The notes beneath the pieces are model-generated. The model was not told the DNA's origin, ran no database searches, and saw nothing but the letters and a program-made list of their open reading frames with translations. A program made the translations under genes and the position numbers. Positions 19,686 to 59,517 of a DNA stretch of 64,000 bases are shown here, piece by piece (the stretch's first letter is position 1; every line of letters begins with the position of its first letter). The stretch spans positions 124,001-188,000 of the IMG/VR virus record IMGVR_UViG_3300042562_001598; one strand, 5' to 3'.

Positions 19686-19741
19686 GGGGCTGGGGATAAC
19701 CTCGTGATAACGACCCGGACCATATGAGAGATAATAAGAAA

Positions 19742-24196: not shown

Positions 24197-26760
24197 TTAG
24201 TTAAGTTCATCGTATATCTCCAGGGTAACAAGGTTCCATACCGGAAGTTCTATTGATTTATATGGGGGATTATAAATGGACTGGGGATAATCATACCTGG
24301 TCTTTATCCAAAGGGGTGTATCAATATTGAGACTTATTGAACTATACACTATACCCTTAACTGACTTCCCCAATGTAATCTTTGTTTTCATAATCTAAAA
24401 TTTGTTGAATTATTAACAGGGTCAACCAATAACCTCCATACTAAATCATATATTGGACCATGCACGGAACTCATCAATGAACGACTAACTGAACGCCACA
24501 CTGAACTCCTCACTTTATCCCTAACTGATTTCCCCAATCTAATCCTGGGGGTAATAACTTCTTTCATATACTATTCTTTATTGAATTATTAACTGAACCA
24601 TACACTAAATTCCACACTGAACTATATACTGAAATATTCACTGAACGCCTAACTGAACAACTCACTGAACTATGTACGGAACTATACATTGAATTATCTA
24701 CTGAACCATACACTAAATTCCACACTGAATTCCACACTAACTTATCCACCGGTTTACCCAATCTAATCCTGGGGGTAATAACTTCTTTCATATACTATTC
24801 TTTATTGAATTATTAACTGAACGCCAAGCTGAACTATACACTGAATCATATACTGAATTCTGCACCGAACTATCCACTGAACCACACACTATACTCCTCA
24901 ATGAAATATCCACTGAACTACTCACTGAATCATACACTGACCTCCTCACTTTACGATTAACCGATTTCCCCAAGACTAACTTTGTTTTCATAATATAAAA
25001 CTTGAACTCCACACCGAATTAAACACTGAAATATTTACTGAACCACACACTATACTCCTCACTGAACTATCCACTGAATAATACACTGACTTCCTCACTT
25101 TAACCTTAACCGATTTCCCCAAGACTAACTTGGGGGTAATAATCTTATTATCCATAATCTAAAATTTGTTGAACTATATACTGAAATATTCACTGAGCGT
25201 CTAACTGAAAACCAGACTGAACTATGTACTAAATCCCACAATGAACTACCCACTGAACTACTCAATGACCTATTCACTGACCTACTAACTGATTCCCCCA
25301 ATGTAATCCTGGGGGTTATTACTTCTTTCATAATCTATTCTTTATTGATTCACGTATTGGACGACTAACTGAACTCTTCACTGAACTATGCACTGACCTT
25401 TCTACTGAATGATACAATGAAATATCCACAGAACTACTTACTAAACGACTAGCTGAATAATCCCTCAATGAATGATACACTGAACGATTAATTGAATCCC
25501 ACAATTTATCCTTAACAGATTCTCTAATTCTAATCTTTGTTTTCATAATCTATTTATTATTGAACTCCTCACTGACCTTATCACTGAACTATTCACTGAA
25601 CGATACACTGAACGATACACTGAACGATATACTGAACTCCTAACAGAACCCCTCACTGAACGATTCACCGAACTATTCACTGACCTTATCACTGAACTAC
25701 TCACTGAACTATCCACTTTACCCTTAACTGACTTCCCCAATGTAATCCTGGGGGATATTACTTCTTTCATAATCTATTCTTTATTGATTCATTAACTGAA
25801 CCCTTAATTGAACTCCATACTGAATTAGTCACTGGTCTCCACACCGAATCATCCACTGACCTAACCACTGTAGTATTAACCGACCCCATACTTGAACCCA
25901 CCACATAATCATGTAGATAAACTCTCACTTTACGATTAACCGGTTTCCCCAATGTAATCTTTGTTTTCATAATATAAAATTTGTTAAACTCCTGATTGGA
26001 GAATCCACTGAACGCCTAACTGAAATATACACCGAACTACTCACTGAACTATATACTGAACCATGCACTGACCTTTCTACTGAACTATATACTGAACCAT
26101 GCACGGAATTATCTACTGAACTCAACACTAACTTATTAACCGACTTCCCCAATCTTATCCTGGGGGATATAACTTCTTTCATATTCTATTCTTTATTGAA
26201 CTATATACTGAATTACTCACTGAACTCTCCACTGAAGACCTTACCAATCTCCATACTGAATCATACACTGGAATATTTACTGAACCACACAATGCACCAA
26301 TCATTGACATATCCAGCGAACTTCTTAATTTATCACTAACTGACCTCCCCAATTTAATATTTGTATTCATTATTAAAAGTTGTTGGATACCACAATGAAT
26401 CACACACTGCATCACATACAGAATCACGCAATAACCAATTCACTGAACTATACACGGAACTATATACAGAATCGTACACTGTAATCCTAAGTGAACTACT
26501 TATTTCACCCTTAACCGGTTTCCCCAATCTAATCCTGGGGGTCATAACTTCTTTCATATTCTAATGTTTATTGAATTAGTCACTGACCTATATACTGAAC
26601 GATATACTGAACTACTCACCGAAATATCCACTGAACTCTTAACTGAATTCCTAACTGGTCTACTTACTGAATTAGCCACTAAATCATACACTGACCTACT
26701 TACTTTATCCATAACCAAACTCCCCAATCTTATCCTGGGGGTTATTACTTTACCATCCAT
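24197..26760 (-). CDS. SVxx-repeat small-protein array 2: 13 coupled paralogous genes
   Basis: Starts 26760, 26557, 26370, 26182, 25970, 25770, 25546, 25331, 25155, 24991, 24791, 24567, 24391; MKEVITPRIRLGKSV and MKTKITLGKSV heads. Confidence 0.88.
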
Positions 26761-27393: not shown

Positions 27394-27777
27394 ATGAAAA
27401 AAGTTATAACATTAACAGAAAACGATTTGGTTCGTTTAATTAAAAAAGTAATTAGTGAACAAATGAAAGTTGACGATTCAGAAGTTTCTCAATTTATTAA
27501 AACACCCAATAAATTAGTTATTCTTGATTTTACAGCTGAATGGTGTGGTCCTTGTCAAAAGATTAAAAAACATTTTGACGAGATTATTGAAAACCCTAAA
27601 TTGAGTAACAAATTTATTTTAGGTTCTTATGATTTTAGTTTTAGTTCACCGTTAGCGAAGAAATATAATATTCAAGGAATACCTTATGTTATGTTTTTTA
27701 GAAATGGTAAAATGATTCATAAGTTTGTAGGGTATAAAGACAAAGAACATATTGTTTCTTTAATACAGAAACTTTAA
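27394..27777 (+). CDS. trxA: Thioredoxin fused to an MKKVITLTENDL leader
   Basis: LDFTAEWCGPCQ, YNIQGIP. Confidence 0.88.
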   Translation: MKKVITLTENDLVRLIKKVISEQMKVDDSEVSQFIKTPNKLVILDFTAEWCGPCQKIKKHFDEIIENPKLSNKFILGSYDFSFSSPLAKKYNIQGIPYVMFFRNGKMIHKFVGYKDKEHIVSLIQKL

Positions 27778-28287: not shown

Positions 28288-28702
28288 CCCCCAATTATTT
28301 TATAGTTGGGGTTTTTTTTATTTTATGATATATTTATATTTAAATAAAATTAAAAAATTAAAAACATGGGAAAAGTAATTAGATTAAGTGAAGACGATTT
28401 AAGTCGTTTGGTTAGAAAAATAATAAGTGAAGCGGTTATTGCTGAATCATTTGATGATGTTGTAAACTATTTAGGTATTACACCTAATGAAAAAGGGAAT
28501 ATAAGTTTTAATTATAACCCACAAACCGGTCTTTATTTGACAAATACTAAAAATAACAGGAATTGTATATTAAAAATTACTCCACCAAAAACTCAACCAA
28601 CTCAACCGGTACGATAAAAAAATATATATTATTTACACCCCCAATTATTTTATATAGTTGGGGTTTTTTTTATTTTATGATATATTTATATTTAAATAAA
28701 AT
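28288..28702 (+). repeat. ~63-bp direct repeat (terminator + TATTTAT motif) flanking 28366..28617
   Basis: cccccaattattttata(ta)gttggggttttttttattttatgatatatttatatttaaataaaat at 28288 and 28638. Confidence 0.88.
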
Positions 28703-29027
28703 AATTAAATTATTAAATATGAAAAAAGTAATAAGATTAACTGAATCCGATTTGATGAGGATTGTTAGAAGAGTGATTAAAGAGAATAACGCACCTGAAA
28801 GATATGTTATAGATATTGAAACGGGTAAAATGGTTGGAACACATCAATATGGTGTTGGTTTTACTGTAAATAAAATTGGTGAGAGAATGGGTTATGAATC
28901 AGACCCTGTTAGTATCCCTGATGGAACAAAGATGGAAGATAATGATAACTCCCCTATGAGAATGGACAGATTTAATGATAGAGCTGAAATGCCTCGTATG
29001 AGAAGGTATAATGATTCACTTGAATAA
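28366..29027 (+). CDS. Two leader-tagged hypothetical proteins (28366..28617, 28719..29027)
   Basis: MGKVIRLSEDDL / MKKVIRLTESDL leaders. Confidence 0.75.
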
Positions 29028-29749: not shown

Positions 29750-30430
29750 ATGAAGATTATAATTACTGAAAGACAAAAGAATTTATTGACGGAGACCATA
29801 CCTGCAGCCATTCGTAGAAGGTTGGACTCGGAGTATATTCACGAGATTGCTGAGAATATTATTGAATATGATATTGACCCTTGTGAATGGGAAGATACTA
29901 ATGATTTTATTGTTGATTTTGCTGATTTGATTGTTCATAACATTATTATTGATATCAATGATGGTGAGGCAACATCCAAAGAGAAGGACTTATTATGGCA
30001 TTATGTGATTGATAATTTTGGTGGTTATATCAGAAACTTATATATTAGAGAATGTCAATAGATTATGAAAATATTAATTAAAGAAGGAATTGTAAAGAAA
30101 ATGGTTAATCGTGTGTTAGGTTACGACTTAACCGACCATATTGAAATGATTACCAGTTGGGAAGAGTTGGACGAATCATTGAAAGATAATGTATTCACTA
30201 TTAATAAAAGTACTTTTAATTGGACTCTTAATAATTATGGTCCAATGTTTTGTTTTAATATTGGTGATACCAAATTCCTAGTTCAGAATCGCCCTGATGG
30301 ATGGTATATACGTAGTGATAATGATGATTTACCTCTTAATATAGAGGATGATGAATTATTGGATTATATTGGTATTGGTTTTATGGGAGTTAAACTCCAA
30401 CAAGTAATTGATGAATTTGTAGAAGAATAA
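29750..30430 (+). CDS. Two leader-tagged acidic hypothetical proteins (29750..30061, 30065..30430)
   Basis: MKIIITERQ and MKILIKEG starts; TATTTAT at 29727. Confidence 0.75.
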
Positions 30431-31183: not shown

Positions 31184-31609
31184 TTATTTTGTTTTGCCCC
31201 AGGTCTTACCTTTTCCTTTGTCTTTACACTTGGCAGGCGTTGGTCTACAGGCCGGATATTTGCTCCTGGATTCACCTTCTTGTCTTCCGCAAGCTTTGTA
31301 TCCACCTTTTCCATCTGGTGCGTTACAATCAACCCATCCGCCTTGTTTTCCTTTTGGTCCTTTTCTTTTGAACCATTGATGTAGTGATTCCTTTTCTGTT
31401 ACTTCGGTTGATTCTTTAATATCCTTCCAAATATTTCCTTTTCTGCATCTAACGATTGCTCCGGATTTATATGCCGATGGTTTATCGTATTTTCTATCCG
31501 CAATTCTTTGGCATCTATCTTTTTTCTTTTCTTCAAGGACTTCGGTCTCAATAAGAATTTGGTTGATTATTCTTATCAAATCTGATTCCGTTAATTTTAT
31601 AACTTTCAT
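31184..31609 (-). CDS. Leader-tagged basic Cys-containing protein
   Basis: MKVIKLTESDL leader; PSAYKSGAIVRCRK and LHQWF..GGWVDC..CGR..KYPACRP modules. Confidence 0.7.
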   Translation of the reverse strand: MKVIKLTESDLIRIINQILIETEVLEEKKKDRCQRIADRKYDKPSAYKSGAIVRCRKGNIWKDIKESTEVTEKESLHQWFKRKGPKGKQGGWVDCNAPDGKGGYKACGRQEGESRSKYPACRPTPAKCKDKGKGKTWGKTK

Positions 31610-31638: not shown

Positions 31639-34600
31639 TTATCGTTTAAGCGACCCCCAAATTGAAAGATAAATGAACCTGGTTGATGTATCCCATAATG
31701 AAACATTGACTGATTTCCATAATGAACTATTAATAAATTCACCTGTTAAATCATGAACTGATGGGATAATTGATTCATATATACATGTTGAATTGCTTCT
31801 TGGTCCATTACCTAAAAACTTAACTGGTTTTCCTACTTTCATAACTTGGATATTCTAACTAATCTAATGGAATTATTAACTTTATCTTTAATTTGTTCAT
31901 AGATATAACCTTCAACGGGGTTATATGTTGATTCTGACACTGAATTACCTATTGGGCTATGTAATGACCAAAATATGGATGAAAATAATTTTCTTCTAAC
32001 GGATATAAGTTTTGTTTTCATGATAAAGTTTTCATTGGTAATGTTATTTCTCTTAAATTTTCCCAAATTGAACTATTAAATAAGTCTTTTTTTTGTTGAA
32101 TAACAAATAAATCTGCTGATTTTTTTAATAAAACATCTGTTGGAACATGTAATGACCAATTAACCTTACCAATAAGTCTATTTGCGACTGATTTCCCCAA
32201 CTTTGTTTTCATAACACTATCACCCATCTTGTTAAATTATTAATTGGTCTCCACACTGAAACATTAACAAAACCCCACACTGAATTTTTTGGTGCCATAT
32301 ATACCTCCTCGTTAACAGAATCTAAAACTGAATTATAGACTGAATTAACAATTACATTATTTATTTTATATCTAACTGGTTTCCCCAATTTTACCTTTGT
32401 TTTCATAATAAAGTTTTCATTAGTTCATCTATTGGGTCATATATTGTTTCATAAACTAAATTCGTCCCAGACCAAAACACTGAATTAGTTATTGTTTCAC
32501 TGACTGATTTATAAACCAACTTATCAACCGAATTAGTTATTGCAATACACAAAGAAATATTCAGTTTTTCATCAACAGGGTTCCCCAATTTTACCTTTGT
32601 TTTCATAAATTTATTCTCCATCTTGTTGAAGTATGTAATGGTGTAATCACCGAATTAACAACCAACTTATGAACTCCATTGCTAACTGATTCCCTAACAG
32701 AACTCCACACTGAATTAAACAATGAATTATTCACTGAATCATACACTGAACCATACACTGAATCACTCACTGAATCACTCACTGACCTACCCACTGACCT
32801 ATTCACTTTAGTCTTAACTGACTTACCCAATTTAATCTTTGTTTTCATAATATAATGTTTGTTAAACTTCTGATTGGAGAATACACTGAATCATCCACTA
32901 AGTTACTCACCGAAATATCCATTTCACTCCTAACTGGACAATACACTGACCTACTCACTAAACTATACACTTTATCCTTAACCGATTTCCCCAATATAAT
33001 CCTGGGGGATATTACTTCTTTCATATATTATTATTTATTGAAGTCCAAACCAAACTATGAACTGACCTACCCACTGAACGATACACTGAAGACCTTACCA
33101 ATCTCCTTACTGAATCATACACTGAAATATCTACTGAACTCCACACTAAATCATCTACTGTCCAAACCGTAGTATTAACCGACCCAATACTTGATTCCTT
33201 CACATAATTATGTAGATAAACTCTCACTTTATCACTAACTGATTTCCCCAAGACTAACTTGGGGGGTATTACTTCTTTCATATTCTATTATTTATTGAAT
33301 TAGTCACTGAACCACTTACTGAATTCCACACTGAACTTCTCACTGAAAGGTTTACTGAATTATCCAATGAATCATACACTAAACTCCACACTGAACCATA
33401 CACTGAACCATACACTTTATCTATAACCGACTTCCCCAATTTTACCTTTGTTTTCATAAATTTATTCTCCATCTCATTGAAATATTAATTGAATCTCTCA
33501 CTGAACTCCATACTGAATTAGTCACTGGAATACTCACTGAACTAACAATTGTATTATTTATTTTATATCTAACAGGTTCCCCCAATTTTACCTTTGTTTT
33601 CATAATGCTATTACCCATCTTGTTAAATCATTAATTGGTTCCATTGTTAATTTATTTGTATCCCATATTGAATCCCAAGCGACATCCTTTAATGAATTAT
33701 ATGTTGAAAAATTTACTGATGTATGAACTGATTCATATATTTCACGCCTAACCGATTCCCCCAATTTTGCTTTCATAACTTTAATTTCCACGCTAATGAT
33801 TCATCAATTGAACGCCTCACCGAACTTCTCACTGAACCCCTCAATGAAAGTTCCACTGTCTTATTCACAGGACTATATACTTCACTATATACTGAACCAA
33901 ACAATGAATTATCCACTAAACTCCAAACTGACTTACCTAACTCTAACTTTGTTTTCATAATTTATTTATTTATTGAATTATTAATAGGTTCAACTATTAA
34001 ATTTCTAATTGGAATCCAAACTAATCTCAAAACTGGACTCCACACTGAACTATGTATTGAACTACTTACTGAACTACTTACTAAAATAGTCACTGAACTA
34101 TTCACTGAATTATTAATTAATTCACTAACTGACTTACCTAACTCTATCTTTGTTTTCATAATCTTATTCTTATTAAACGACTAATTGAAATATTCACTGA
34201 ACTCTGTAATGAAGCCCACACTGAATCATTGATTAAACCAATTACTGAACTAACCAATGAACTATCCACAGAATAATACACCGAATCCCACACTTTCATT
34301 GAATTATTTATGTCACCCTTAACATTTTTACCTAACTCTAACTTTGTTTTCATAATCTTACACTCCATCTTGTTAAATCATTAATTTGTCTCCAAGTTGA
34401 ACGATATATTGAATTATATACTAGTTTTGATGTTGATTTCCTTATTGGATAATGCACTGAATTCTTCACTAATTGATACACTGACTTACCAACTGATTTT
34501 CCTAATCTAACCTTGGGGGTTATAACTTCTCCCATAATCTATTATTTATTGAATTACAAATAGGATTATATACTGAACTCCGCACTGAAATATGCACTGA

Positions 34601-35671
34601 AACATACACTGAATTAGTCACTGATTCACTTACTAAACCGCTCACTGAACCACACATAGAACTATACGCTGAACGACACACGGAATCATGTACTGAAATA
34701 TCCACCGAACCCCTCACTTTAACCTTAACTGGTTTTCCTAATCTAATCTTTGTATTCATATTATAATTAATTTTTAAGTTTTTCTATAGGGATACTCACT
34801 GAACGCCAAACTGAATTGTAGGGAAAGTTCCACACTGAATCATTGACCGAAATAACTATTGAAAGATATAATAACTCAATAATTTCATTCCGTTGCATTA
34901 CCTTAATTGGTTTACCTAATTTCATAATCTATTTGTTATTGAATCAACCACTAAACCCCACACTGACATAAAGACTAAATCCCTAACTAAATCTCTCACA
35001 TTATTATTAGTTATATGATATGATTGACTCAACATATCATCACTCACTAAAATATCAACTGAGCTACATACTGACCTTCCAACTGATTTACCTAAAATAA
35101 TATTTCTTTTCATAATTTAATCCTCCATATCATTAAATTATTAATTGGTGTTCTAATTGAATCCCAACCTTTATCTAAAAGATTAGTTGTACGAATAGTC
35201 ATTGACCATTTCACAGAGTTACTTACCGAACTCTTAAATAAGTAACCAATTGGTTTTCCTATTTCTATCTTTGTTTTCATATACTTCTTCTTATTGAACG
35301 AGCCATTGAACTATCCACTGAATTTCTAACCGGGACACACACTGACTCACTCACAAAGATATAAGATTGGTTATTAAACTTAAAGTATATCAGTTCCTCT
35401 GTTTTATCTTCAACCATCTTATATATAAATTTATTCACCTCATTCTTAAGTGATTTCCCTGTTTTCATTCTAATAATCTATTTTTTATTGTTTCTATAAT
35501 TGGTGACCAAGCTAACCATTGTACTAAATCATCCACCGAATCATAAATTATATCATCAACTAAATTATAAACTGAATTATTCACCAATTTATCAATTGAT
35601 GGATACATATTACCCCCAATATCCCATATTTCTTCACTAATTGGTTTCCCCAATTTTATCTTTGTTTTCAT
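31639..35671 (-). CDS. SVxx-repeat small-protein array 3: 21 coupled paralogous genes
   Basis: Starts 35671, 35468, 35280, 35113, 34925, 34759, 34535, 34353, 34159, 33958, 33776, 33603, 33457, 33281, 33024, 32848, 32606, 32406, 32212, 32021, 31842. Confidence 0.88.
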
Positions 35672-36472: not shown

Positions 36473-36891
36473 ATGCCGAAAACTAGGTTAATTATCGGAA
36501 AATCAATGAGTGAGGAGTTAATATCTCACATATCTTCAGGTTTTGCTCAATCCGAACATGAAACAATCCGAACCAATGCTAACGATGTAATTTGGGATAA
36601 CATAATTGATTCTGTTTGGGCTGCAACAGATTTTGAGGTTGGCGAGTTAATTTGGAATACATTTAATGTTAAATTATCTTTATCATGAAATTAGGAAAAC
36701 ATGTTTTAGTTCCCAGTTTAACTTATAAACTCCGGGAACCAACTTACACAAAGATTAAAGACAGCGTGGATATATTAATTATAATTTCAACTGAACGGAA
36801 AGTCAGAAATATTATTTTTGATTTTGTGTCAAATTCGGTAACCACACCCATTAAAGTTAATGTTAAAAACAATTATTTTAGGTATTTATAG
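36473..36891 (+). CDS. Two divergent members of the SVxx family (array 4: 36473..36688, 36685..36891)
   Basis: KTRLIIGKSM / MKLGKHV heads; WDNIIDSVW and FVSNSV; TATATTTG at 36445. Confidence 0.6.
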
Positions 36892-36893
36892 TT

Positions 36894-39323
36894 ATGAAAA
36901 TTATTATCACAGAAAATCAATATGAGTTATTGAAAGATAAACCAAAAGTTTATAACTTTCCATCTTTGGATATATTTGGACATGAAAAACCAATAGATAA
37001 TTGGAATTTGATGCAAAAGTTTTTAGATAAAAAGGGTAATCCTGATTTTACCATTGATGGTAATTTGGATTTAAGGGATGCACCAATTGAATCATTAGGA
37101 AATTTAACTTCGGTTGGGGGGCATTTGGATTTATGTTTTACTCAAATTGAATCATTAGGAAATTTAACTTCGGTTGGGGGTTATTTAAATTTAAGATACA
37201 CACCAATTAAATCATTGGAAAATCTAACATCAGTTGGGGGTACTTTGTTTTTAACAAATTCATCAATTGAATCATTGGGAAATCTAACTTCAGTTGGGGG
37301 TACTTTGAGTTTAGAAGGAACACCAATTAAATCACTAGGAAATCTAACTTCAGTTGGGGGTAGTTTATTTTTAAGAAAAACTCCAATATCCGAAAAATAC
37401 ACTGAAGAAGAAATAAGAAGTCAAGTTAAAGTTGAAGGAGATATATACTTATGAAAATAATAATAACAGAAAATCAATACGAATTATTGAAAGAAATGGA
37501 AGATAAACCAAAGGTTTATCACTTCCCTTCATTGGATATATTTGGACATGAAAAACCAATAGATAATTGGAATTTGATGCAAAAGTTTTTAACTAAAAAA
37601 GGTAACCCTGATTTTACTATCACAGGTGATTTGGATTTAAGTGACACCCTCATTGAATCATTGGGAAATCTAATTTCGGTTGGGGGTACTTTGTATTTAA
37701 TGGGAACACAAATTAAATCATTGGGAAAACTAACTTCAGTTGGGGGTGGTTTGTTTTTAGAGTATTCATCAATTGAATCATTGGGAAATCTAACAACAGT
37801 TGGGGGTGCTTTGAGTTTAGAAGGAACACCAATTAAATCATTGGGAAATCTTAAATCGGTTGGGGGTAGTTTGTATTTAAAAAGTTCACCAATTAAATCA
37901 TTGGGAGAACTAACATCAGTTGGGGGTAATATATATTTAACTGATACATCAATTAAATCATTGGGAAATCTAACTTCGGTTGGTGGTAGTTTGTTTTTAA
38001 GAAGAACACCAATATCAAAAAATTACACTGAAGAAGAAATAAGAAGTCAAGTTAACGTTGAAGGAAAAATATACTTATGAAAATAATAATTACAGAAAAT
38101 CAATATGAGTTATTGAAAGAAACCAAAGATAAACCAAAAGTTTATAACTTTCCATCGTTGGATATATTTGGTTATGAAAAACCAATAGACAATTGGAATT
38201 TGATGCAAAAGTTTTTAGCTAAAAAAGGTAATCCTGATTTTACCATTGATGGTAATTTGGATTTAAGTGATACTCTAATTGAATCATTAGGAAATTTAAC
38301 TTCGGTTGGGAATAATTTGTATTTATCATACACACCAATTAAATCATTAGGAAATCTAACTTCAGTTGGGGGTGATTTGAGTTTAGGAGGAACACCAATT
38401 AAATCATTGGGAAATCTTAAATCGGTTGGTGGTTATTTGGATTTAAGAGATACATCAATCGAATCATTGGGAAATCTAACTTCGGTTGGGGGTACTTTGC
38501 ATTTAAATGAAACGCAAATTGAATCACTGGGAAATCTAACAACAGTTGGTGGTAATTTGGATTTAGAAGATACAACAATTGAATCGTTTGAAAATCTTAC
38601 TTCGGTTGGTGGTAGTTTGTTTTTAAGAAGAACACCAATATCCGAAAAATACACTGAAGAAGAAATAAGAAGTCAAGTTAAAGTTGAAGGAAAAATATAC
38701 TTATGAAAATTATTATCACAGAAAATCAATACGAATTATTGAAAGATAAACCAAAAGTTTATCACTTCCCTTCATTGGATATATTTGGTCATAAAAAACC
38801 TATAGATAATTGGAATTTGATGCAAAAGTTTTTAGATAAAAAAGGAAACCCAGATTTTACTATCACAGGTGATTTGGATTTAAGTGACACCCCCATTGAA
38901 TCATTGGGAAATCTAATTTCGGTTGGTGATAATTTGTATTTATCATACACACCAATTAAATCATTAGGAAATCTTACTTCGGTTGGGGGTGGTTTGGATT
39001 TAAGAAATACACCAATTGAATCATTGGGAAATCTAACTTCGGTGGGAGGTAATTTGTATTTAACATACTCAAAAATTGAATCATTGGGTAATCTTACTTC
39101 GGTTGGGGGCGATTTGGATTTAGATGATACACCGATTAAATCAATAGCTAATCTAACTTCAGTTGGGGGTAGTTTGTTTTTATATAATACACCAATTGAA
39201 TCATTAGGAAAACTAAAATCGGTTGGGGGTAGTTTGTTTTTATATAATACACCAATATCCGAAAAATACACAAAAGAAGAAATAAAAAGTCAGGTTAAAG
39301 TTGAAGGAGGTCTATACTTATGA
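36894..39323 (+). CDS. Four tandem LRR-like proteins (36894..37454, 37451..38080, 38077..38706, 38703..39323) with MKIIITENQ leader
   Basis: 5-6 copies each of the 20-aa unit xLxLxxTPIxSLGNLTSVGG (60-bp DNA repeat); conserved N- and C-caps. Confidence 0.88.
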
Positions 39324-39628
39324 AAATAATAATTACAGAAAATAGAATATTCAGTGTTGCTAAAAAACAACTGACTAAAAAGTTTGGTGATTTAACGCCT
39401 TTTACCTATGATGAGGAAGATGATATCGTTTATTATATTAATAATAAACGAGCACTTTATTTTGAATATGATAAAGAAGAAAATTATTGCCGAATTGGTG
39501 ATACTATTTGGGATTTCTTAACAGATATCTTTGGCTTAGATGATGACCAAATAAAAAAAGTTACAAAAGAATGGTTGGAAGACTATTATAATCTTAAGGA
39601 TGTTTCAGTATTAAAATCAGAGTGGTAA
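39320..39628 (+). CDS. Leader-tagged hypothetical protein, paralog of 63494..63832
   Basis: MKIIITENRxxSVAKKxLTKxFGDLTP and DIFGxDxDQI shared. Confidence 0.8.
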   Translation: MKIIITENRIFSVAKKQLTKKFGDLTPFTYDEEDDIVYYINNKRALYFEYDKEENYCRIGDTIWDFLTDIFGLDDDQIKKVTKEWLEDYYNLKDVSVLKSEW

Positions 39629-39708
39629 AATAATATTAAAATTATTTTCAAGTTATTCATTTTTTTCATTATCTTTGTTCAAGAAATTAATCACTTAAAC
39701 AAATCAAT

Positions 39709-39912
39709 ATGAAAATTAATCCCCACATTCTAGCAACATCCATATTCCTATTAATAATTTCAGGAATGATAGTAACAGAAGTCCTACAACAATTCATAAC
39801 CTTTGAGGACTTAACCAACGAAATTATCCTTTATATAGGAACAACAACAATGGGAATACTACTTTTCGTTAGTTCCTTTGAGAAAAATAAAACTAAAACC
39901 CCCCAGGACTAA
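39709..39912 (+). CDS. Small two-TM membrane protein
   Basis: Hydrophobic ORF after TATCTTTG (39670). Confidence 0.65.
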   Translation: MKINPHILATSIFLLIISGMIVTEVLQQFITFEDLTNEIILYIGTTTMGILLFVSSFEKNKTKTPQD

Positions 39913-39983
39913 CTTGGAGGGTTTTTTATTATTACACTATAAATTTTAGTGAAAATTACCTATATTTACCATATTTATATAGT

Positions 39984-41475
39984 ATGAACGCAAAACTTAA
40001 CGAAAAGCTAAAAAAGTTAGTAGAGGAAAAAGGTTATAGAGAAGCTTGTGAATTGATATCACTAAAGATGTATGATTTGGCAACATTAACTGACTTAAAA
40101 ATAGAAGGTGAATTTGCTCAAGGTATATTATTTGATTTATTGGATGATAATAAAATTCCAACCACTTATGAGGATTTCAACATTAAAACAAGAGATATTG
40201 AAGATATAATAATATGGGAAAATGATTCTGTTGCCGCGGAGGCAATGCCATTTTATAAACCCAACCAATTAAATGTTTGGATGTTTATCTATACCAATGA
40301 AAATGACGATGAGAAATATTTCCATGGTGAAATTCCGAACTCTTATATAATGTCAAAGTGTAAAGGTAGTTTTGATAATCTTGAAGAATTTATTACTTGG
40401 ATTAAAGATTATTATTACCCAACATCAGCAAAAATGATTGCAGAATTAATATCATTAAATAATGATTCAACAAAATAACTAAAGTATGACCCCAAAAGCA
40501 AAAGAAAAAATACAACAATTGGTTGATAAAATAGGATTTCATAGGACATGTGAAAATTTACATATGAAATCATATGATTTAGTTAGACTATTTGGTGTGA
40601 AGATTAATAACTCAGAAGTATGTAATAATTTAGTATTTGATTTATATACAGATTCTCTTTTACCAACAACATATAAAGAATTTACCCTTTATATTGATGA
40701 TGAAGGTATTTTATCTTGGATTTCCACAGATGCCGAAGTTTGGGCAACACCTTATTGGAATTGTGAAAATGAACTACCAATAGATATAGTTCATTATAAA
40801 CGCTATAATGAAGATAATATAGATTACGAATACTTATCAGATAATTTTAAGTTAAAACCGGAGTTTACCGATATTACAGAGTTCATTCAATATCTTAAAG
40901 ATTTTACATATCCAGAGACATATAAAAAAATTCACAGGTTAATAGATAGAATTGAAGAATATGAAAATAATTTATAAAATAACCACAGGATGAACCCAAA
41001 AGCAAAAGAAAAAATATTAAAATTAATAGAAAGAGAAGGATTTGATGGAGTTCTTGATAGCCTACAACTAAAAGCGTATGACTTAGTTGAAAAGTTTGAC
41101 CTTGAAATTAATAATCCTGATATGTGTTGGACTTTAATTTATGATTTATATAAAGATAATAAATTACCCAGTCAATATAAAGAATTTACTATTGAACTTG
41201 ATAATGATGGTTTTTTAGGTTGGGAGGATGTTTCAACGAATACTCTTTTTTACGCAACACCTTTCTGGGATGCTGAAAGTAATTTACCTATAAATATAGT
41301 AACTCATAAAGAATATGATGAAAGAGACTTACCGGATGAATTAAGGTATATTTATATTCAAATACCTTATGAATTTAATAATCTTGAAGAATTTATTACT
41401 TGGTTAAGAGATTTTTATTATCCAACAACTTATAAAGTAATTAAAGATATAACTAATAGAATTGACCAAGCATGA
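39984..41475 (+). CDS. Three tandem paralogous acidic proteins (39984..40478, 40486..40977, 40990..41475)
   Basis: Shared EKxxxLxxxxG, YDL, DLxxDxxxPxxYxxF, AxP(F/Y) and EFIxxxxDxxYP motifs. Confidence 0.82.
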
Positions 41476-42256
41476 AAATAATAATTACAGAGAATAAATT
41501 ATATAACTCAATATACAACTATATTGATAAATTTTACGATACATCTAAAATAGGTCAATTCAACCCAACAACTGATGACGAAATTGGGAATTGGGGTGAT
41601 AAGGAAAATCCGTATATTACAGAGTTTTATTACTATATATTTGATGGAGATTATGATGAAAACGGGGTAGCGTTTTTATATATTCAAAAAGAATATTATG
41701 ACGAGAAACACTCAAATATGTCATTTATAAATCAATCACCAATATTAATTGTTAATAATTATGGCGATTTTACAGAAATGTTTAGTGATTATTGGAAAGA
41801 ACCAATGAAACAATGGTTTTGGGATAAATATAAACTACCGGTTAAAACGATAGTTGCTGATTAATAAAATAAAATATGAAAATAATAATCACAGAAAATA
41901 AGCTAAACACCTCATTTGAGAAAATGCTTAATAGGGAATTGAAACACCTAAAAGAATATAAGGAATCCGACGATTTTGACGAAGAAAGTCTCCCAGATAA
42001 TATTTCTTGGGATACAATGAATTGGATTGAATATGTTGATAAAATTGAGGTTGTTCAAGTTGATAAAGAAACTAACCCAAATCCAGAATTTAGTTCTTTT
42101 AATGTTCTAATTAATGTTTATACAAGTTATTTAACTAATTTTGATGTTGAAAGTATTATTTCAGACCTTGAAGATAATATTAACGAAACTTTACAATATA
42201 ATGTAAGTTTAATTGAAAACGATGTAATAAATAACGGAACAACAACTGAATGGTAA
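41472..42256 (+). CDS. Two MKIIITENK-leader acidic proteins (41472..41864, 41876..42256)
   Basis: Leader family. Confidence 0.75.
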
Positions 42257-42257
42257 T

Positions 42258-42707
42258 ATGAAAATAATAATTACAGAAAATCAATATACATTATTGAAAG
42301 AAATGGAAGATAACCCAAAAGTTTATAACTTCCCATCATTGGATGTTTTCGGTAACGAAGAACCAATAGATAATTGGAATTTGATGCAAAGTTTTTTAGA
42401 GAAAAAAGGTAACCCAGATTTTTCTATTAGTGGTAATTTGGATTTAAGAGATACACCAATTGAATCACTAGGAAATCTTACTTCGGTTGGGGGTTATTTA
42501 AATCTATATGGTACACCAATTGAATCATTAGGTAATCTAACTTCAGTTGGGGGTAGTTTGATTTTATCACGAACACCAATTGAATCATTGGAAAATCTAA
42601 CTTCGGTTGGGGGGTTTTTAATTTTACGAAATACACCAATATCAGAAAAATACACAGAAAAAGAAATAAGAAGTCAGGTTGAAGTTAAAGGAAATATACA
42701 CTTATGA
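42258..42707 (+). CDS. Fifth LRR-like protein (3 repeats) with MKIIITENQ leader
   Basis: Same caps and 20-aa unit as 36894-39323. Confidence 0.88.
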   Translation: MKIIITENQYTLLKEMEDNPKVYNFPSLDVFGNEEPIDNWNLMQSFLEKKGNPDFSISGNLDLRDTPIESLGNLTSVGGYLNLYGTPIESLGNLTSVGGSLILSRTPIESLENLTSVGGFLILRNTPISEKYTEKEIRSQVEVKGNIHL

Positions 42708-43231
42708 GAATAATAATTACAGAAAATCAAAGAACCCAAATGTTAAATAAAATTTGGGACAAATTAAAAGCAAACGGAAAACAACCAACACTAAACCGTG
42801 AGGTTCTAAACTCTTTAGGTTTTAATACTTGGGATTCCGAACCAAGATTTGCATTAACACATTACCTTGGCGGTTATGATAAAGTAAAGGAAGATGCTAA
42901 AAATTTAGTATTAGGAAAAACCTTTAATACCGATGACTATGATGGAACTGGTAGTTATAGTTTTACTTTTACAGTTGAAGATGTATGGGAAGAAAATGAA
43001 GAAGAACAAGCAATCCAATTTATAGTAAAATTTGGTAACGGAACTGTTGATTGGTATGATGAAGATGGTGAAGAAATTGGTCCAACAGATATTTTAGATG
43101 CTTATTCACAAGCGGATATGACTGAAAGTTGGGAATTTAAGTCTGAAATACAAGATGTTATTAAAATGATTTTAGAACAAGAAGTAACCAACAAAACCGG
43201 AATTGATGTTGAAGTTGAATTATTATGGTAA
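42704..43231 (+). CDS. Leader-tagged acidic hypothetical protein
   Basis: MRIIITENQ start. Confidence 0.75.
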   Translation: MRIIITENQRTQMLNKIWDKLKANGKQPTLNREVLNSLGFNTWDSEPRFALTHYLGGYDKVKEDAKNLVLGKTFNTDDYDGTGSYSFTFTVEDVWEENEEEQAIQFIVKFGNGTVDWYDEDGEEIGPTDILDAYSQADMTESWEFKSEIQDVIKMILEQEVTNKTGIDVEVELLW

Positions 43232-43239
43232 AATCAATA

Positions 43240-43272
43240 AAAAAACCCATCTTATTTAGATGGGTTTTTTAT
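43240..43272. terminator. Bidirectional terminator between convergent genes
   Basis: aaaaaacccatct-tattt-agatgggtttttt. Confidence 0.8.
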
Positions 43273-44007
43273 TTATCGTTTTAAGATTTCTTTAGTGTAA
43301 TACTCATCAAAACCTTCCATCATCTGACTAACTGATTTGTTTTTATCAATTCCAATAACCGTATCAATTAAACCAAATTCTTTAGCTTCGTCAGAATTAA
43401 ACCATTTATCATGTCTTGATGATTCAAGCATTTCCTCAAAAGTTTTTCCGCAATTATCAGCTAAAATTTTGAATAACATATAGTTATATTTTTCAGCTTC
43501 CAATTGGTTAATCCTAGTATCTTGTACATTACCCCCTGTAGAATGTGAAACAAAATGCGTCATAACCTTTGAGTGAATTAATGATGACCTTTTACCCTTT
43601 TCTCCAGAAGATAACAATACAGAACCCATTGACGCACACATTCCAACATTGATTGTTGCAACATCAGCTTTAATGTAATTCATAACATCTCTAATCCCCA
43701 ATCCAGCTAATACTGAACCCCCAGGGCTTGATATCTGTAGAGTAATATCTTTTTTATTAACACTATCCAAGAACAATAATTGGGCTTCAACAATTGACGC
43801 CATTGTATCTTCAACACCTCCGGATACCCAAATAATCCTATCCATAAGAAGTCGCGAGAAAATATCTATTTGGGTAGCTCTCATTTCCCTTTCTTCCAAA
43901 ATGTATGGTGTTACATTATCAATATGTTTTTGATAGTAATGTAGATTAAGGCCTGATAAACCTTTTTCACCCATTGCAAATTTCTCAAATTCGTTTTTGT
44001 AATTCAT
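43273..44007 (-). CDS. clpP: ATP-dependent Clp protease proteolytic subunit
   Basis: DIFSRLLMDRII, AQLLFLD, ISSPGGSV, GMCASMGS (Ser), KVMTH (His), RHDKWF (Asp). Confidence 0.93.
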   Translation of the reverse strand: MNYKNEFEKFAMGEKGLSGLNLHYYQKHIDNVTPYILEEREMRATQIDIFSRLLMDRIIWVSGGVEDTMASIVEAQLLFLDSVNKKDITLQISSPGGSVLAGLGIRDVMNYIKADVATINVGMCASMGSVLLSSGEKGKRSSLIHSKVMTHFVSHSTGGNVQDTRINQLEAEKYNYMLFKILADNCGKTFEEMLESSRHDKWFNSDEAKEFGLIDTVIGIDKNKSVSQMMEGFDEYYTKEILKR

Positions 44008-44122: not shown

Positions 44123-45964
44123 ATGGAAAAAACTGTTATGAGTGAGTTAATTACGGAGTTATATCCGGAGGTTATCATATTATACATTGAGGAATTGGAA
44201 AGGCAAATGTTGGATAAAGGGAATATGTGGATACCGGATACCCCCTCTTATTTTGTTCAGGTGATGTATACTACAATTTCTTATAATGATTATAATATGT
44301 CAAACCTTGTATCGGATTTTACGGGATGTGAAGTTAATATATTCAAATAATCAGTCTATAACCTTAAAAAAAATAAAATAAATCAGTCTATAACCTTAAA
44401 AAATAAAAATTAATATATGAGCAATTTAGTAGAACACGCAAGAACAGAATTAAAATCAGCAGGATTGTTAGATGAGACCACAGATTTTTATGGTGGTGAA
44501 ACCGGTAAGGCGGTATTGGAATTAATTGAGAAATTTTCAGAACAAGGTCATTCCGGGACTTCAGCGGGTCTTGTGGCGGGTTTATTCGCAAGATTGGCGA
44601 AATATGATGTTATCACCCCAATCACTGGTGAAGATGATGAATGGAACAATATTTCAGAAGAAATGGGTCAAATATTACATCAAAATAAAAGATGTTCATC
44701 ATTATTCAAGAGAGCGGATAATAAAGTAAGTTATTCTGATGCGATAATCTTTAGAGGTGAAGAATCCTGGGACACTTTTACCGGTAAAGTTGAGGATATT
44801 TCAAGTAGTCAATTCATTAAAGGGTTCCCATTCACACCTAAAACATTTTACATTGATGTTTATAAAGAAATTTATGATTATGATAAACACGGAAGTGAAG
44901 AAGATGCGAGAATTATCACCACTAGTAATGGTAATTATGTATATTTCATTAAAGATAAAACCCAATTAGAAGAAATTTTCAATTATTACGATAAAAAATA
45001 GTTTATCCAAATAATTTGTTTATCTTTGTATCGTTGAATGTATAAAACAAAAATATATGAGCACTAATTTAGAAGACTGGGAAGCTGTAAATTACAGAAT
45101 GAGAGAAGAAGGGATTGACTATTGCTTTGAACATTATAGCAATTGGGATGAAATCCAAGATGACGAATTCCACCGATTAAGATTGGGTTTTCTTCAATAT
45201 ATGAAAGAAATTAGAGAATATGTTAATAAAAAAATTGAGGAAGAAGAGTTTAAAGAGTGGGATAGATTAGATGACTTATTTGAAGAATAACCAATAAAAA
45301 TTATATATTATGAACAAGTACAATACAAAGAATAACAAAAAATATTTAGGGTTACTAAACTTTGAAGGTGATGTTTTTAGAGCATACAAAGAAACTGAAG
45401 ATAAATTTGTTATCATTGACGATAACCACGAATTTATTTTAACAACAGATAAAAATGGTGTTCGCGATGTTTTATCAGGTAAAATTATATTAACAACAAG
45501 TAGTGGTAGAACTTACAAAATATCTGAAGAACACCAAAACGCAAGACCAAAACAAGAAGCTATTGATAATTTCTTGGGGACTGAATCCGGTGACGACTAT
45601 AAGTTATGGTTTGACCTTAAAAATAAAATTGATAAAAAAGGTTTTGAGAAGTGTTTTCTTATCTATAGCGATTGGGACGAAATTAAAGATAAAGAATTTC
45701 ATTCCTTAAAAAGACATTTTATAAAATCTATGGGAACATTGATGGGTTATGTTAATACAAAAGTTAGCGAAGGTAAAAAATAATATGGGTAAAACTTTGC
45801 CAACACCATATCCTGGTCAATCATTAGAAGACTATAAAAACCAACTAATATCTTTTAAGAAAAACTATTGGAAATTCCTTAACCCCCTCTCTAAAAGTAA
45901 AAGTAAAAGTGGGGGTAGGGAAATTCCATTACCACCTGAACACTTAAGACCAAAAAAAGAATAG
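44123..45964 (+). CDS. Five hypothetical proteins (44123, 44417, 45057, 45310, about 45785)
   Basis: 44417 has FSEQGHSGTSA; 45057 and the C-terminus of 45310 share CFxxYSxWDEIxDxEFHxL. Confidence 0.7.
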
Positions 45965-46044: not shown

Positions 46045-47292
46045 ATGGGACTTATGAATAAATTAGATAAACAATACACAGACCTACTTCAAGATATCCT
46101 TGATAATGGAACCACTAAAGGTGACCGTACTGGTACAGGGACAATCTCAGTATTCGGAAGACAAATCAGACATAAAATGTCAGAGGGATTCCCACTTTTG
46201 ACTACAAAGAAAATGCCGTTCAAAACAATCGTAACTGAACTTCTTTGGTTTTTAAGAGGTGATACAAATATTAAGTATTTGGTTGATAATGGATGTAATA
46301 TTTGGAATGGTGATGCTTTTATTAATTACAATAAGTACGTATGGAAGTTAAGTAATTTAGAATTACTAACACAAGAAGAATTCATCAACAAAATCAAAAC
46401 AAATGATACATTTGCTAAAGAGTGGGGTGAGTTAGGTCCAATCTACGGTAAGCAATGGAGACAATGGAATACTCATAAAACTGTAGTAGTAGGGCATAAT
46501 GGAAATCATAATGAATTTGGGACAGTTGTTATAGACCAAATCCAAAACCTAATCAACGACCTTAAAACAAATCCAGACTCAAGACGATTAATGGTTACTG
46601 CTTGGAATCCTGCAGATTTAGAAGCAGCAGTGCTTCCTCCATGCCATTATGGATTTCAAGTTTATACAAGAGAGTTGAGTTTGGATGAACGATTTAAGAT
46701 TGCTTACAAAAATTTAGAACTAAGAAAAAAATTAGAAGCTGAATCTGCTATGCTACATTATCCATCAGGACATAATAAAGTTATGGATGACGCAAATATT
46801 CCAACCAGAGCAATCTCTTTAATGTGGAATCAAAGAAGTTGCGATTTTTTTCTCGGAATTCCTTTTAATGTAGCGTCTTATGGATTGTTATTAGAAATAA
46901 TTGCTAAAGAAGTCAATATGATTCCAGATGAATTGATTGGTAATTTAGGTGATGTTCATTTGTATTCAAATCATATTGAACAAGCAAAAGAACAAATCGG
47001 TAGAGAATTAACTCACGAAGAAAAAATTGAGTATGCTCGTTCATTATATGGGAATGAAGTGTGGTGGGATATAAATGATAAAAGAGTTATAACAGTTTTA
47101 CAAAGAAAGAGACAAACAAGAGAACCATATCCATTACCAACATTAAACATCAACACAGAGTTTTGGAAAACACAAAGTGGAAAATGTGGAGTAGGTCTAT
47201 TGGATACTAATCTAGAAGGATTTGAAATAAGTGATTTTCAAATAGAGAATTATCAATCACATCCAACAATAAAAGCACCTTTAAGTAACTAA
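46045..47292 (+). CDS. thyA: Thymidylate synthase with insertions
   Basis: DRTGTGT, FPLLTTKK, ELLWFLRG, GPIYGKQWR, SRRLMVTAWN, LPPCHY, QRSCDFFLGIPFN, HLYSNH. Confidence 0.96.
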   Translation: MGLMNKLDKQYTDLLQDILDNGTTKGDRTGTGTISVFGRQIRHKMSEGFPLLTTKKMPFKTIVTELLWFLRGDTNIKYLVDNGCNIWNGDAFINYNKYVWKLSNLELLTQEEFINKIKTNDTFAKEWGELGPIYGKQWRQWNTHKTVVVGHNGNHNEFGTVVIDQIQNLINDLKTNPDSRRLMVTAWNPADLEAAVLPPCHYGFQVYTRELSLDERFKIAYKNLELRKKLEAESAMLHYPSGHNKVMDDANIPTRAISLMWNQRSCDFFLGIPFNVASYGLLLEIIAKEVNMIPDELIGNLGDVHLYSNHIEQAKEQIGRELTHEEKIEYARSLYGNEVWWDINDKRVITVLQRKRQTREPYPLPTLNINTEFWKTQSGKCGVGLLDTNLEGFEISDFQIENYQSHPTIKAPLSN

Positions 47293-58217: not shown

Positions 58218-58571
58218 ATGAAAATAATTATCACCGAAGAACAATACAAACATTTTAATATTGTTAAAAAATCAGATTTAGAGGATTCCGGAACTTGGTC
58301 TGCGGATGTATTAACACATAAAAGTGAAGGTAAAAATATATATACTTATAGTGATGGTGTTTTTACAAAAAGAGAAAAAAAACCATTGGAAAGAGGTGTC
58401 ACTCGTCACGGGGGTAGTAGAACCGAAGTTTTTTATCTATCTGATGAACAAGCGGAACAGGCAAATGATTTAATTAGACAGTCTCGTGAGTTAGAACAAC
58501 AGGCGAAAGAATTACGTCAACAAGCCAAAGAAGTTATACAACAAGAATTTCATTTACCACAAAAACGATAA
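58218..58571 (+). CDS. Leader-tagged hypothetical protein
   Basis: MKIIITEEQY; TATTTAT at 58197. Confidence 0.75.
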   Translation: MKIIITEEQYKHFNIVKKSDLEDSGTWSADVLTHKSEGKNIYTYSDGVFTKREKKPLERGVTRHGGSRTEVFYLSDEQAEQANDLIRQSRELEQQAKELRQQAKEVIQQEFHLPQKR

Positions 58572-58647
58572 ATAAAAACCCCTCCGGTAAAGAGGGGATT
58601 TTTATTGACATATAGTGATTTTTAACCTATTTTTATATAAAAAAAAT

Positions 58648-59517
58648 ATGTGGAATAAAGACGATTATAATAAGTTTCATTTAATTGACATTATTGATGG
58701 TATGAAAAAAATACCTGATAATAGTGTTGATATAGTTCTTAGTGACCCCCCATATAATATTGGTAAAGATTTTGGTATCTGTAAAGATAATATGGAATTA
58801 ACTTCTTATTTGGAATGGTGTGATTTATGGATTGACGAATGTAAACGAATTATAAAACCAACAGGTGTTATTTACATTTACGGGTTCAGTGAAATTTTAG
58901 CACATATTTCAGTAAGGATTGATTTACCCAAAAGATGGTTAATATGGCACTACACCAATAAAACAACACCATCTTATAAGGGGTGGCAGAGAAGTCACGA
59001 GAGTATTTTATATATTTGGAAAGATAAACCAGTGTTTAACAGAGATGCTGTTAGAGTTCCGTATACCGAAACATTCCTAAAAAATTCATCAGGTAAAAAA
59101 AGAACCAATACCGGAACTGCAAGATTTGGTAATTCATCAGATACGGTATACACCGCTCATGAAAATGGTGCGTTACCTAGAGATGTATTTACAGAAATTT
59201 CAACATTAGCCGGAGGTGCTGGTAGAGAAAGATATTTCTTATACAAAGGAGTTGTTTACCCTTCAAAAGAGATTAAGAAATTTCCCGTTGATGAATGTAT
59301 TAAACACCCAACGCAAAAACCTTCTAAATTAACTGAAAAGTTAATAAAAGCATCATTACCGGAGAAAGATGGTGTTGTAGTTATACCTTTTGGAGGTTCA
59401 GGAACTGAAGGTGTTGTGTGTAAAAGAATGGGGGTTGATTTCATCGGATTTGATATTAACGATGAATATATTAAGTTAGCGGAAGGGGCTTTAGAACAAT
59501 ATAAAACAATATATTAA
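58648..59517 (+). CDS. N6A/N4C DNA methyltransferase (beta class)
   Basis: SDPPYN, HPTQKP, IPFGGSGT, FIGFDIN. Confidence 0.93.
   Translation: MWNKDDYNKFHLIDIIDGMKKIPDNSVDIVLSDPPYNIGKDFGICKDNMELTSYLEWCDLWIDECKRIIKPTGVIYIYGFSEILAHISVRIDLPKRWLIWHYTNKTTPSYKGWQRSHESILYIWKDKPVFNRDAVRVPYTETFLKNSSGKKRTNTGTARFGNSSDTVYTAHENGALPRDVFTEISTLAGGAGRERYFLYKGVVYPSKEIKKFPVDECIKHPTQKPSKLTEKLIKASLPEKDGVVVIPFGGSGTEGVVCKRMGVDFIGFDINDEYIKLAEGALEQYKTIY

Follow-up and report, generated by a model that had tools for sequence, protein, structure and literature searches.

Leucine-rich repeat proteins sharing an N-terminal leader in a T4-like jumbo phage from lake water: candidates for head-packaged, injected binders

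The LRR genes

The 64,000-nucleotide stretch analyzed here (hereafter the window) covers positions 124,001-188,000 of the 282,192-bp viral contig IMGVR_UViG_3300042562_001598, retrieved copies of which are 100% identical to it, and near-identical contigs were found in many lake-water metagenomes. A T4-type head module resides on the same sequence, and the element is therefore a T4-like jumbo phage. Between positions 36894 and 42707 the window carries five paralogous genes coding for leucine-rich repeat (LRR) proteins, all starting with the same short leader (MKIIITENQY.LLK). Genes 1 to 4 are arranged back-to-back, each overlapping its successor by ATGA, gene 5 is found apart, and seven non-LRR genes (39320-42256) are included in the same span. 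Coordinates are collected in Table 1.

The five proteins are 78-83% identical (alignment) and contain 0-1 cysteines each. The leader is followed by an N-cap (KPKVYxFPSLD.FG..PIDNWNLMQ.FL.KKGNPDF), a run of 20-aa/60-bp units (GxLxLxxTxIxSLGNLTSVG) and a C-cap (TPIS..YT..EI.SQV.V.G..L), both caps being invariant or nearly so in all five. Cutting in register yields 5, 6, 6, 6 and 3 full units in genes 1 to 5, followed by a half unit which fuses with the C-cap, and Tandem Repeats Finder reports 60-bp arrays in 5/5 genes, with 75-78% matches. Five leader-tagged paralogues with near-constant caps and these unit numbers had been described in an earlier, sequence-only reading of the stretch, and all of this is confirmed. 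One public gene call of LRR gene 1 runs past the TGA stop (...IYLWK), genetic code 4 having evidently been applied to a contig both short and AT-rich; the long open reading frames (ORFs) of the window are intact under code 11.

Fold of the LRR proteins

The protein encoded by gene 3 was modelled with AlphaFold2 from an alignment of 108 homologues (predicted local distance difference test, pLDDT, 92.5; predicted TM-score, pTM, 0.84). The model is confident, and features a regular LRR solenoid with helical caps and short strands at unit positions 3-4, 12 and 16-19. The best Foldseek matches in the PDB are nearly all LRR or L-domain proteins (FlrP, SDS22, IpaH/SspH LRR domains, InlA/InlC), the LRR domain of Leptospira LIC10831 being also among them; scores are modest, with E-values of 5e-3 or worse. 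The family profile matches the solved Vibrio flagellar LRR protein FlrP at an E-value of 7.9e-16, the two having the same type of 20-residue unit. The Pfam scores of the window proteins stay below thresholds (LRR_4, 10-15 bits for a cut-off of 27; Recep_L_domain, at most 20.8 for a cut-off of 21.8), while larger homologues do pass LRR_4 or Recep_L_domain. In the unit core, L-x-L-x-x-T-x-I, Thr replaces the usual Asn/Cys of LxxLxLxxN/CxL. Many similar viral clusters, some auto-named 'Leucine-rich repeat', are found in viral structure and language-model libraries; PHROGs, NCBIfam and PADLOC gave no match for the window LRR proteins.

Because of the confident gene 3 model and the profile match to FlrP, the assignment of the five proteins to predicted LRR solenoids is sound, and their description as LRR-like in the sequence-only reading is borne out by model, Foldseek matches and profile alike. 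That the five proteins are LRR binders is regarded as highly probable.

Variation and selection on the predicted binding face

Entropy was computed per position over the 26 units of the window. It reaches 2.4-3.1 bits at positions 2, 4, 6 and 7, 1.9 bits at position 9, and is below 1 elsewhere, SLGNLTSVG being near-invariant; variation falls in the x-L-x-L-x-x segment, just where it had been noticed by eye. The same pattern is found in 460 units from 120 homologues. In window and family units, positions 9, 11 and 17 are partly variable, and the remainder almost fixed. The variable residues alternate with the buried Leu3 and Leu5 of the predicted strand, and in the LRR architecture such positions form the ligand-binding sheet and the ascending edge. 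The alternation with the leucines, the DSSP string of the model and general knowledge of LRRs predict that the variable residues are surface-exposed, on the ligand-binding face, as proposed at the outset. The variable positions are rich in D, N, Y, S, T, G, R and E, with K, I and L almost absent, a set of residues unlike the outcome of drift in a genome with 30% guanine plus cytosine (GC).

Selection was measured on units inside the window, because no syntenic orthologues at intermediate divergence were found. Thirteen disjoint pairs of nearest units were compared; their variable codons show 44 nonsynonymous and 5 synonymous differences, their scaffold codons 17 and 34 (Fisher 4e-9). The pooled Nei-Gojobori nonsynonymous rate (dN) is 0.89 at variable codons, and at scaffold codons the synonymous rate (dS) is 0.37 and dN 0.07. 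Omega (dN/dS) is about 0.15-0.2 for scaffold codons; maximum-likelihood estimates on the unit tree are 0.15 for these, and 1.2 (4 codons) or 1.95 (6 codons) for variable codons, values above 1 being point estimates from few codons which are not formally significant. Scaffold codons are position-specific (TTG at Leu3, TTA at Leu5, CTA at Leu16), and the units are therefore young relative to synonymous saturation. These data support strong purifying selection on the scaffold, with evolution of the variable residues at least as fast as expected under neutrality; the binding face is considered likely to be under diversifying selection.

A variable binding face would fit receptor recognition as well, and the fold matches listed above include the LRR domains of both InlA/InlC and LIC10831. 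The five proteins might accordingly be read as structural or adhesive parts of the virion (capsid decoration, internalin-like surface binding), the paralogues having different surface specificities. This is improbable: the proteins measure just 149-209 aa, carry no anchoring, fibre or baseplate domain and no PHROG structural match, and their genes are far from tail and head genes, amid those of unrelated small leader-bearing proteins.

Exchange of units and stability of the array

Units recur across genes, as the sequence-only reading had pointed out, with nucleotide identities of 88% (units 1.5 and 2.4), 95% (2.4 and 3.3; 3.2 and 4.2) and 97% (2.1 and 4.1). Nearest-neighbour relations among units are mosaic and offset, 3.1 pairing with 1.1, 3.2 with 4.2, 3.3 with 2.4, and 1.4-1.5 with 2.3-2.4. 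A 3-residue indel behind the leader unites genes 2, 3 and 5, while variants of the N-cap split genes 1 and 3 from genes 2 and 4. The mosaic relations and the conflicting groupings argue for recombination and for gain and loss of units between copies; the notion of repeat shuffling thus survives in the form of units exchanged or offset between paralogues. In the cap tree, the five window copies make up one well-supported clade, and paralogues of other phages likewise group by genome. The arrays are therefore either lineage-specific expansions, or homogenised inside each genome.

The locus is stable. Six near-identical contigs have the same unit order, bar one unit lost from gene 1 (contig L007) and one from gene 2 (contig L006). 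Contigs from four lake metagenomes (2016, 2020, 2023 and 2024), compared as assembler contigs rather than as reads, differ by one substitution in the LRR genes (38893 C>T), with no indels and no joints.

Programmed hypervariation at the variable codons, by a diversity-generating retroelement or by cassette assembly of the type known for the variable lymphocyte receptors (VLRs) of lampreys, was weighed against this background. Variation is limited to few codons, units are mosaic, and the variable codons at positions 2 and 4 are all of the NNT type, as AAY-templated mutagenesis would yield. Positions 6 and 7, however, also contain AGA, GAA and GGA codons, neither a reverse transcriptase (Pfam/PHROG scans of larger ORFs) nor a template repeat was seen, and near-identical strains and four metagenomes spread over eight years provide one substitution and no joints. 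Programmed hypervariation is hence extremely unlikely. A diversity-generating retroelement was rejected on the lack of a reverse transcriptase among the scanned ORFs, substitutions beyond NNT codons and absence of population hypervariation; VLR-like cassette assembly was rejected on the fixed unit order in near-identical strains and the stability of the locus from 2016 to 2024. The LRR array is germline-fixed and made up of five paralogues. The sequence-only reading had spoken of a VLR-like repertoire and of a binder library; 'library' is not supported, and 'VLR-like' applies to structure, by analogy, but not to mechanism, the genes being germline-fixed, without cysteine-rich caps and stable over the years sampled, and no assembled repertoire being present.

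Size and distribution of the LRR family

A word-indexed search retrieved 1,488 relatives, all annotated as 'hypothetical'. An exhaustive profile search retrieved 6,111 clusters (50% identity) at E<=1e-3, a count which includes matches to the repeat within larger proteins, and 311 clusters at E<=1e-30. Small members keep the plan leader, N-cap, units, C-cap, and mostly have four units. The repeat is found also in very large proteins, some of which carry ART-PolyVal, PcfJ, Amidoligase_2 or kinase domains. ART-PolyVal is the Pfam family named for polyvalent proteins, and the LRR module co-occurs with it in one protein. Polyvalent proteins have been proposed to be injected along with the DNA (Iyer et al. 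2017, PMC5512222); LRRs go unmentioned in that work. The LRR proteins of the window are single-domain, unlike polyvalent proteins, which combine several unrelated effector domains.

In public phage records, DNA similarity is confined to the ClpP region, shared with two huge uncultured phages, and protein searches identified relatives of the LRR proteins in Edwardsiella phage Edno5 and EBPR podovirus 1 only. One scan of 185,579 bacterial species genomes yielded three loci, all in metagenome-assembled genomes, and gave no host assignment; the family is therefore not a host family. The LRR family is large, almost entirely phage-borne, nearly missing from cultured phages as from bacteria, and uncharacterised; that the genes are phage-encoded, as first stated, is supported. 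The literature was searched for phage LRR anti-defence proteins, and nothing relevant was found.

The N-terminal leader

The leader is not LRR-specific, since 12 ORFs in the window start with M[KR]IIITE. The DNA upstream of leader-bearing ORFs differs from gene to gene, and Ile, Thr, Lys and Glu codons of the leader differ synonymously; conservation therefore acts on the leader peptide. In a non-redundant set of related loci, 140 leader ORFs fall into 37 unrelated body families, the LRR family being the biggest. The leader consensus (about 15 residues) is M-K-[IY]-I-I-[TSN]-E-[NSER]-Q-[YLF]-x-x-[LI]. Glu7 is found in 140/140 ORFs (Asp was allowed in the search), Ile5 in 138/140 and Gln9 in 128/140. 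Nine N-termini in the window contain the core motif, which is missing from internal positions (0 in 10,337 residues). Leaders may be present or absent inside one and the same family, and in the gene 3 model residues 1-20 are of low confidence, with a helix from residue 7. Four further ORFs of the window, one of them coding for a thioredoxin, carry a one-residue-longer variant, MK(K)VI.LTE.DL..I(V)..(V)I.E. Within one phage group, at least 37 unrelated families of small proteins carry the leader, which is a flexible addition to them. No description of the leader strings was found in the literature searched or in four family libraries. A role in sorting or processing at the peptide level is likely.

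Two further observations concern the leader. The metagenomic protein P0127 (272 aa) is a natural fusion of a homologue of the 29750-30061 product and an LRR protein, with the second leader (..RKIIITESQY..) in an internal position; going by its sequence, this architecture would look like a polyprotein to be cut at the leader. Assembly-graph branch points, at which contigs diverge, are located just past the leader codons (37473, 41541, 42273-42278) in several metagenomes. Leader and preceding C-cap therefore act as a dispersed DNA repeat, and more leader genes are to be expected elsewhere in this or related genomes.

Possible link of the leader to the phage head

The T4-type head module was reached by walking overlapping contigs, 100% identical to the window at the overlap, and encodes Terminase_6N, Portal_T4, Peptidase_S77, DUF4494, a 455-aa scaffold-like protein and Gp23. 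The internal proteins of T4 are diverse, act against restriction, and have only a capsid-targeting sequence (CTS) in common (PMC3012670). The T4 prohead protease gp21 cuts always after Glu, and Alt is trimmed at ITE-6 and LTE-619 (PMC5694885). The leaders described above have ...I-I-T-E and ...L-T-E just as far from their start as the ITE-6 site is in Alt. In the head modules of related phages, the leader is found at the start of a family of 124-128-aa proteins (MKVIITENQLLRLFE, MEVIINESQ..., MKILITEKQ...), the genes of which lie 23-40 nt upstream of the S77 protease gene. Gene order in these modules is portal, 244 aa, 145 aa, leader ORF, protease, scaffold, gp23, so that the leader family occupies the slot which genes 67 and 68 of the prohead core have in T4. 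In the phage of the window, five (I/L)-x-E motifs fall within the first 60 residues of the capsid protein, and alignment to T4 gp23 gave no unambiguous cleavage site. By analogy with T4, the leader may load proteins into the prohead and be clipped thereafter; the case is circumstantial but coherent.

The favoured reading, to which a probability of about 0.4 is assigned, is that the LRR proteins are head-packaged, injected binders. The leader would be the counterpart of T4 capsid-targeting or propeptide sequences, and direct proteins into the prohead core. Cleavage behind the invariant Glu7 (I-T/S/N-E), by the Glu-specific T4-type S77 prohead protease, would then leave mature LRR proteins, to be carried by the capsid and delivered to the cell along with the DNA. 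In the step which is the weakest, each paralogue would bind and block a host protein before phage genes are expressed. Plausible targets would be defence factors, such as modification-dependent nucleases acting on the heavily methylated phage genome, although host defence proteins as targets are speculative. Duplication and diversification of the face would widen the coverage of host variants. Injection had been a guess of the sequence-only reading, and the leader backs it circumstantially. A broader proposal is put forward tentatively, and is rather doubtful as it stands: the leader may be a new signal, widespread among uncultured aquatic T4-like phages, for loading into the head and for processing, and may mark an 'ejectome', in which the LRR arrays would serve as a germline repertoire neutralising variable defence proteins at DNA entry. 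The ejectome so proposed would comprise dozens of small families, including LRR binder arrays, thioredoxin and many acidic proteins.

Several points weigh against the favoured reading. The leader has no significant similarity to the T4 CTS (MKTYQEFIAE), the MK start and (I/L)-x-E being the only features in common by eye, in a comparison of 10 residues which is too short for alignment-based support. In this phage, the neighbour of the protease is a 156-aa MKKGK protein, not a leader ORF. The LRR island codes for small acidic proteins (pI 4-5.8) and is distant from late structural genes, a placement typical of early host-takeover genes. A thioredoxin, no obvious capsid cargo, bears the variant leader, and a distant LRR homologue, that of the lambdoid Edwardsiella phage Edno5, is leaderless and located in the early-left region. 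Relaxed constraint is an alternative to selection for the omega values of the face. With a ClpP gene of its own beside the island, and a Clp ATPase encoded elsewhere, the phage might use the leader as a degron.

Much of this would suit proteins of another kind, namely early cytoplasmic binders, never packaged, which act in host takeover or against host defence, and in which the leader is a shared regulatory tag (a degron read by Clp and giving timed turnover, or a strand plus amphipathic helix which serves for docking or oligomerisation). This, the main rival, is a real possibility, if not a probable one. The LRR genes belong to an accessory block of small acidic proteins which shares its terminator with the convergent ClpP gene, and a 683-aa Clp/Hsp100-type ATPase is among the phage products, as is a UVR-domain protein; a degron or some other regulatory peptide stays a serious alternative because of the ClpP gene sharing the terminator of the island and of the Clp ATPase. 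The leader is found on a DUF5872 protein as on thioredoxin, its presence varies within one family, T-E-x-Q/D followed by an amphipathic helix resembles an ordinary helix N-cap, and the Edno5 homologue maps to a lambdoid early region. On the other side, the invariant Glu, with Ile/Leu two residues earlier, fits the specificity of the encoded T4-type prohead protease, the leader is present also on a family inside head-assembly modules, directly upstream of that protease, and no match to a known Clp degron was obtained in the tests made.

Comparison with known systems

A small LRR protein from the polar flagellar motor of Vibrio, FlrP (PDB 8z5u and relatives), has a 20-residue unit (GxLxLxxTPIxxLxxxxxVxG) and a core size like those of the window proteins, the Foldseek identity being 32%, and both have a beta-solenoid LRR core. 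FlrP differs in that it has a Sec signal peptide and acts as a periplasmic spacer on the flagellar rod; it lacks the MKIIITE leader, has other caps, forms no tandem paralogue arrays and is not phage-borne.

T4 IPI, IPII, IPIII and Alt are, as the leader-bearing proteins, unrelated small proteins with a common short N-terminal leader and an (I/L)-x-E site, in a phage with a T4-type portal, S77 protease and gp23; IPI* is injected and inhibits a restriction enzyme of the host. The leader of the window differs in being longer, conserved to Gln9 and the helix, and present on dozens of families including an enzyme (thioredoxin). No T4 internal protein is an LRR protein, and packaging and cleavage are putative for the window leader.

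The VLRs of lamprey and hagfish share with the window proteins the LRR scaffold, diversity at strand residues of the concave face and mosaicism at the level of units. They differ because assembled somatically from cassettes, and because provided with cysteine-rich LRRNT and LRRCT caps and a stalk; the window LRRs are encoded by five genes fixed in the germline and stable for years, contain one cysteine or none, and have helical caps with no relation to those of VLRs. IpaH/SspH LRR domains and YopM feature short (about 20-residue) bacterial-type LRRs, and have targets inside another cell. These proteins differ in type III delivery and, for most, in the fusion to an E3 ligase domain; TM-scores to the window LRRs are low (0.27-0.40), with no relationship at the sequence level. 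'Leucine-rich repeat' proteins of uncultured Caudovirales (UniProt A0A6J5LZF9 for example) are true members of the family (42% identity, same size and fold, viral). Such entries carry automatic annotation only, and function, leader, arrays and selection are not described in the literature found.

Other features of the region

The window is an accessory region, with genes for DNA methyltransferases, thymidylate synthase, ClpP, thioredoxin, FKBP and a Tad3 Thoeris inhibitor (Table 1). The Tad3 homologue resides 1.2 kb from the leader/LRR block, and the stretch has therefore at least one recognised anti-defence gene. ClpP, the Clp ATPase, the UVR-domain protein and the ClpB_D2-small fragment could, on sequence grounds, assemble into a Clp protease machine of the phage's own. 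At least six DNA methyltransferases are encoded by the phage. The C5 methyltransferase at 5195-7123 is split by an intein with a LAGLIDADG domain, and a fourth C5 methyltransferase is located just upstream of the window. The thymidylate synthase (46045-47292, + strand; 415 aa) gives a two-part Pfam match, and therefore contains, compared with ordinary ThyA, an insertion of some 100 residues or more.

The tiny paralogous genes clustered in three arrays start with MKTK[IV]xLGKSV or MKEVI[TS]PRIRLGKSV, followed by runs of a 12-bp/4-aa x-S-V-x repeat. They are a second, larger repeat-protein family near the LRR genes, and account for GC-rich patches of reversed skew. The T4 late promoter TATAAATA is not enriched (24 found vs. 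21 expected), and no tRNAs were found in the window.

Table 1. Location of LRR genes, leader-bearing genes and other features; coordinates refer to the window unless contig L153 or L154 is named
Feature	Coordinates	Strand	Description
LRR paralogue 1	36894..37454	+	186 aa; leader, N-cap, 5 units (37059-37358), half unit and C-cap
LRR paralogue 2	37451..38080	+	209 aa; 6 units (37625-37984); ATGA start overlaps gene 1 stop
LRR paralogue 3	38077..38706	+	209 aa; 6 units (38251-38610); structure-modelled copy
LRR paralogue 4	38703..39323	+	206 aa; 6 units (38868-39227)
LRR paralogue 5	42258..42707	+	149 aa; 3 units (42432-42611); most diverged copy
Leader gene, non-LRR	39320..39628	+	102 aa, MKIIITENR...; paralogue of 63494-63832
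Three paralogous genes	39984..41475	+	164, 163 and 161 aa; leaderless here, related families elsewhere leader-bearing
Two unrelated leader genes	41472..42256	+	130 and 126 aa, MKIIITENK...
Leader-bearing acidic protein	42704..43231	+	175 aa, pI 4.2, MRIIITENQ...; final gene of the + block
Leader gene outside the LRR span	29750..30061	+	103 aa, MKIIITERQ...
Further leader genes	58218-58571, 63494-63832
Thioredoxin	27394..27777	+	24-residue variant leader (MKKVITLTENDLVRLIKKVISEQ); complete Trx domain from residue 25
Other variant-leader ORFs	28366-28617, 28719-29027, 31184-31609	+, +, -	one DUF5872 protein, two unknowns
Intrinsic-terminator-like hairpin, bidirectional	43240..43270	.	13-bp stem, T runs on both sides; closes the leader/LRR block and the convergent ClpP gene
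ClpP	43273-44007	-	convergent with the leader/LRR block
Tad3 homologue, confident (type I Thoeris inhibitor)	44417-45001	+	PF25185, E 3e-34, 118 bits vs. cut-off 27
Methyltransferases	2623-7123, 19724-20548, 58615-59517	+, +, +	three adjacent C5 cytosine and two N6/N4 enzymes
Tiny paralogous genes (at least 37, 52-95 aa) in three arrays	9972-13195, 24197-26760, 32209-35671	+, -, -
Two more tiny paralogues	36473-36891	+	directly before the LRR genes
T4-type head module	L154 11356-20766		about 36-45 kb past window end; 239-aa and 156-aa genes between Portal_T4 and Peptidase_S77
Clp/Hsp100-type double-AAA ATPase (683 aa), UVR-domain protein, ClpB_D2-small fragment	L153 10924-12975, 13176-13643	-, +	about 30 kb past the window

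Significance

LRR binders and T4-style leader-tagged proteins are both known; what is new is their combination. Even if the proteins are not packaged, the occurrence of one N-terminal peptide on 37 unrelated families still stands as a finding, absent from the literature searched. Should the leader prove to be a head-loading signal, a sequence tag would suffice to list injected proteins straight from the metagenomes of uncultured phages, a task which today requires virion proteomics of cultured phages. Such a listing would point to counter-defence factors, because injected proteins meet host immunity first. The LRR family is very large and nearly all viral, and provides small, almost cysteine-free scaffolds with a naturally diversified binding face, which binder engineering could use like repebodies and DARPins. 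In phages, it is a clear arms-race gene family.

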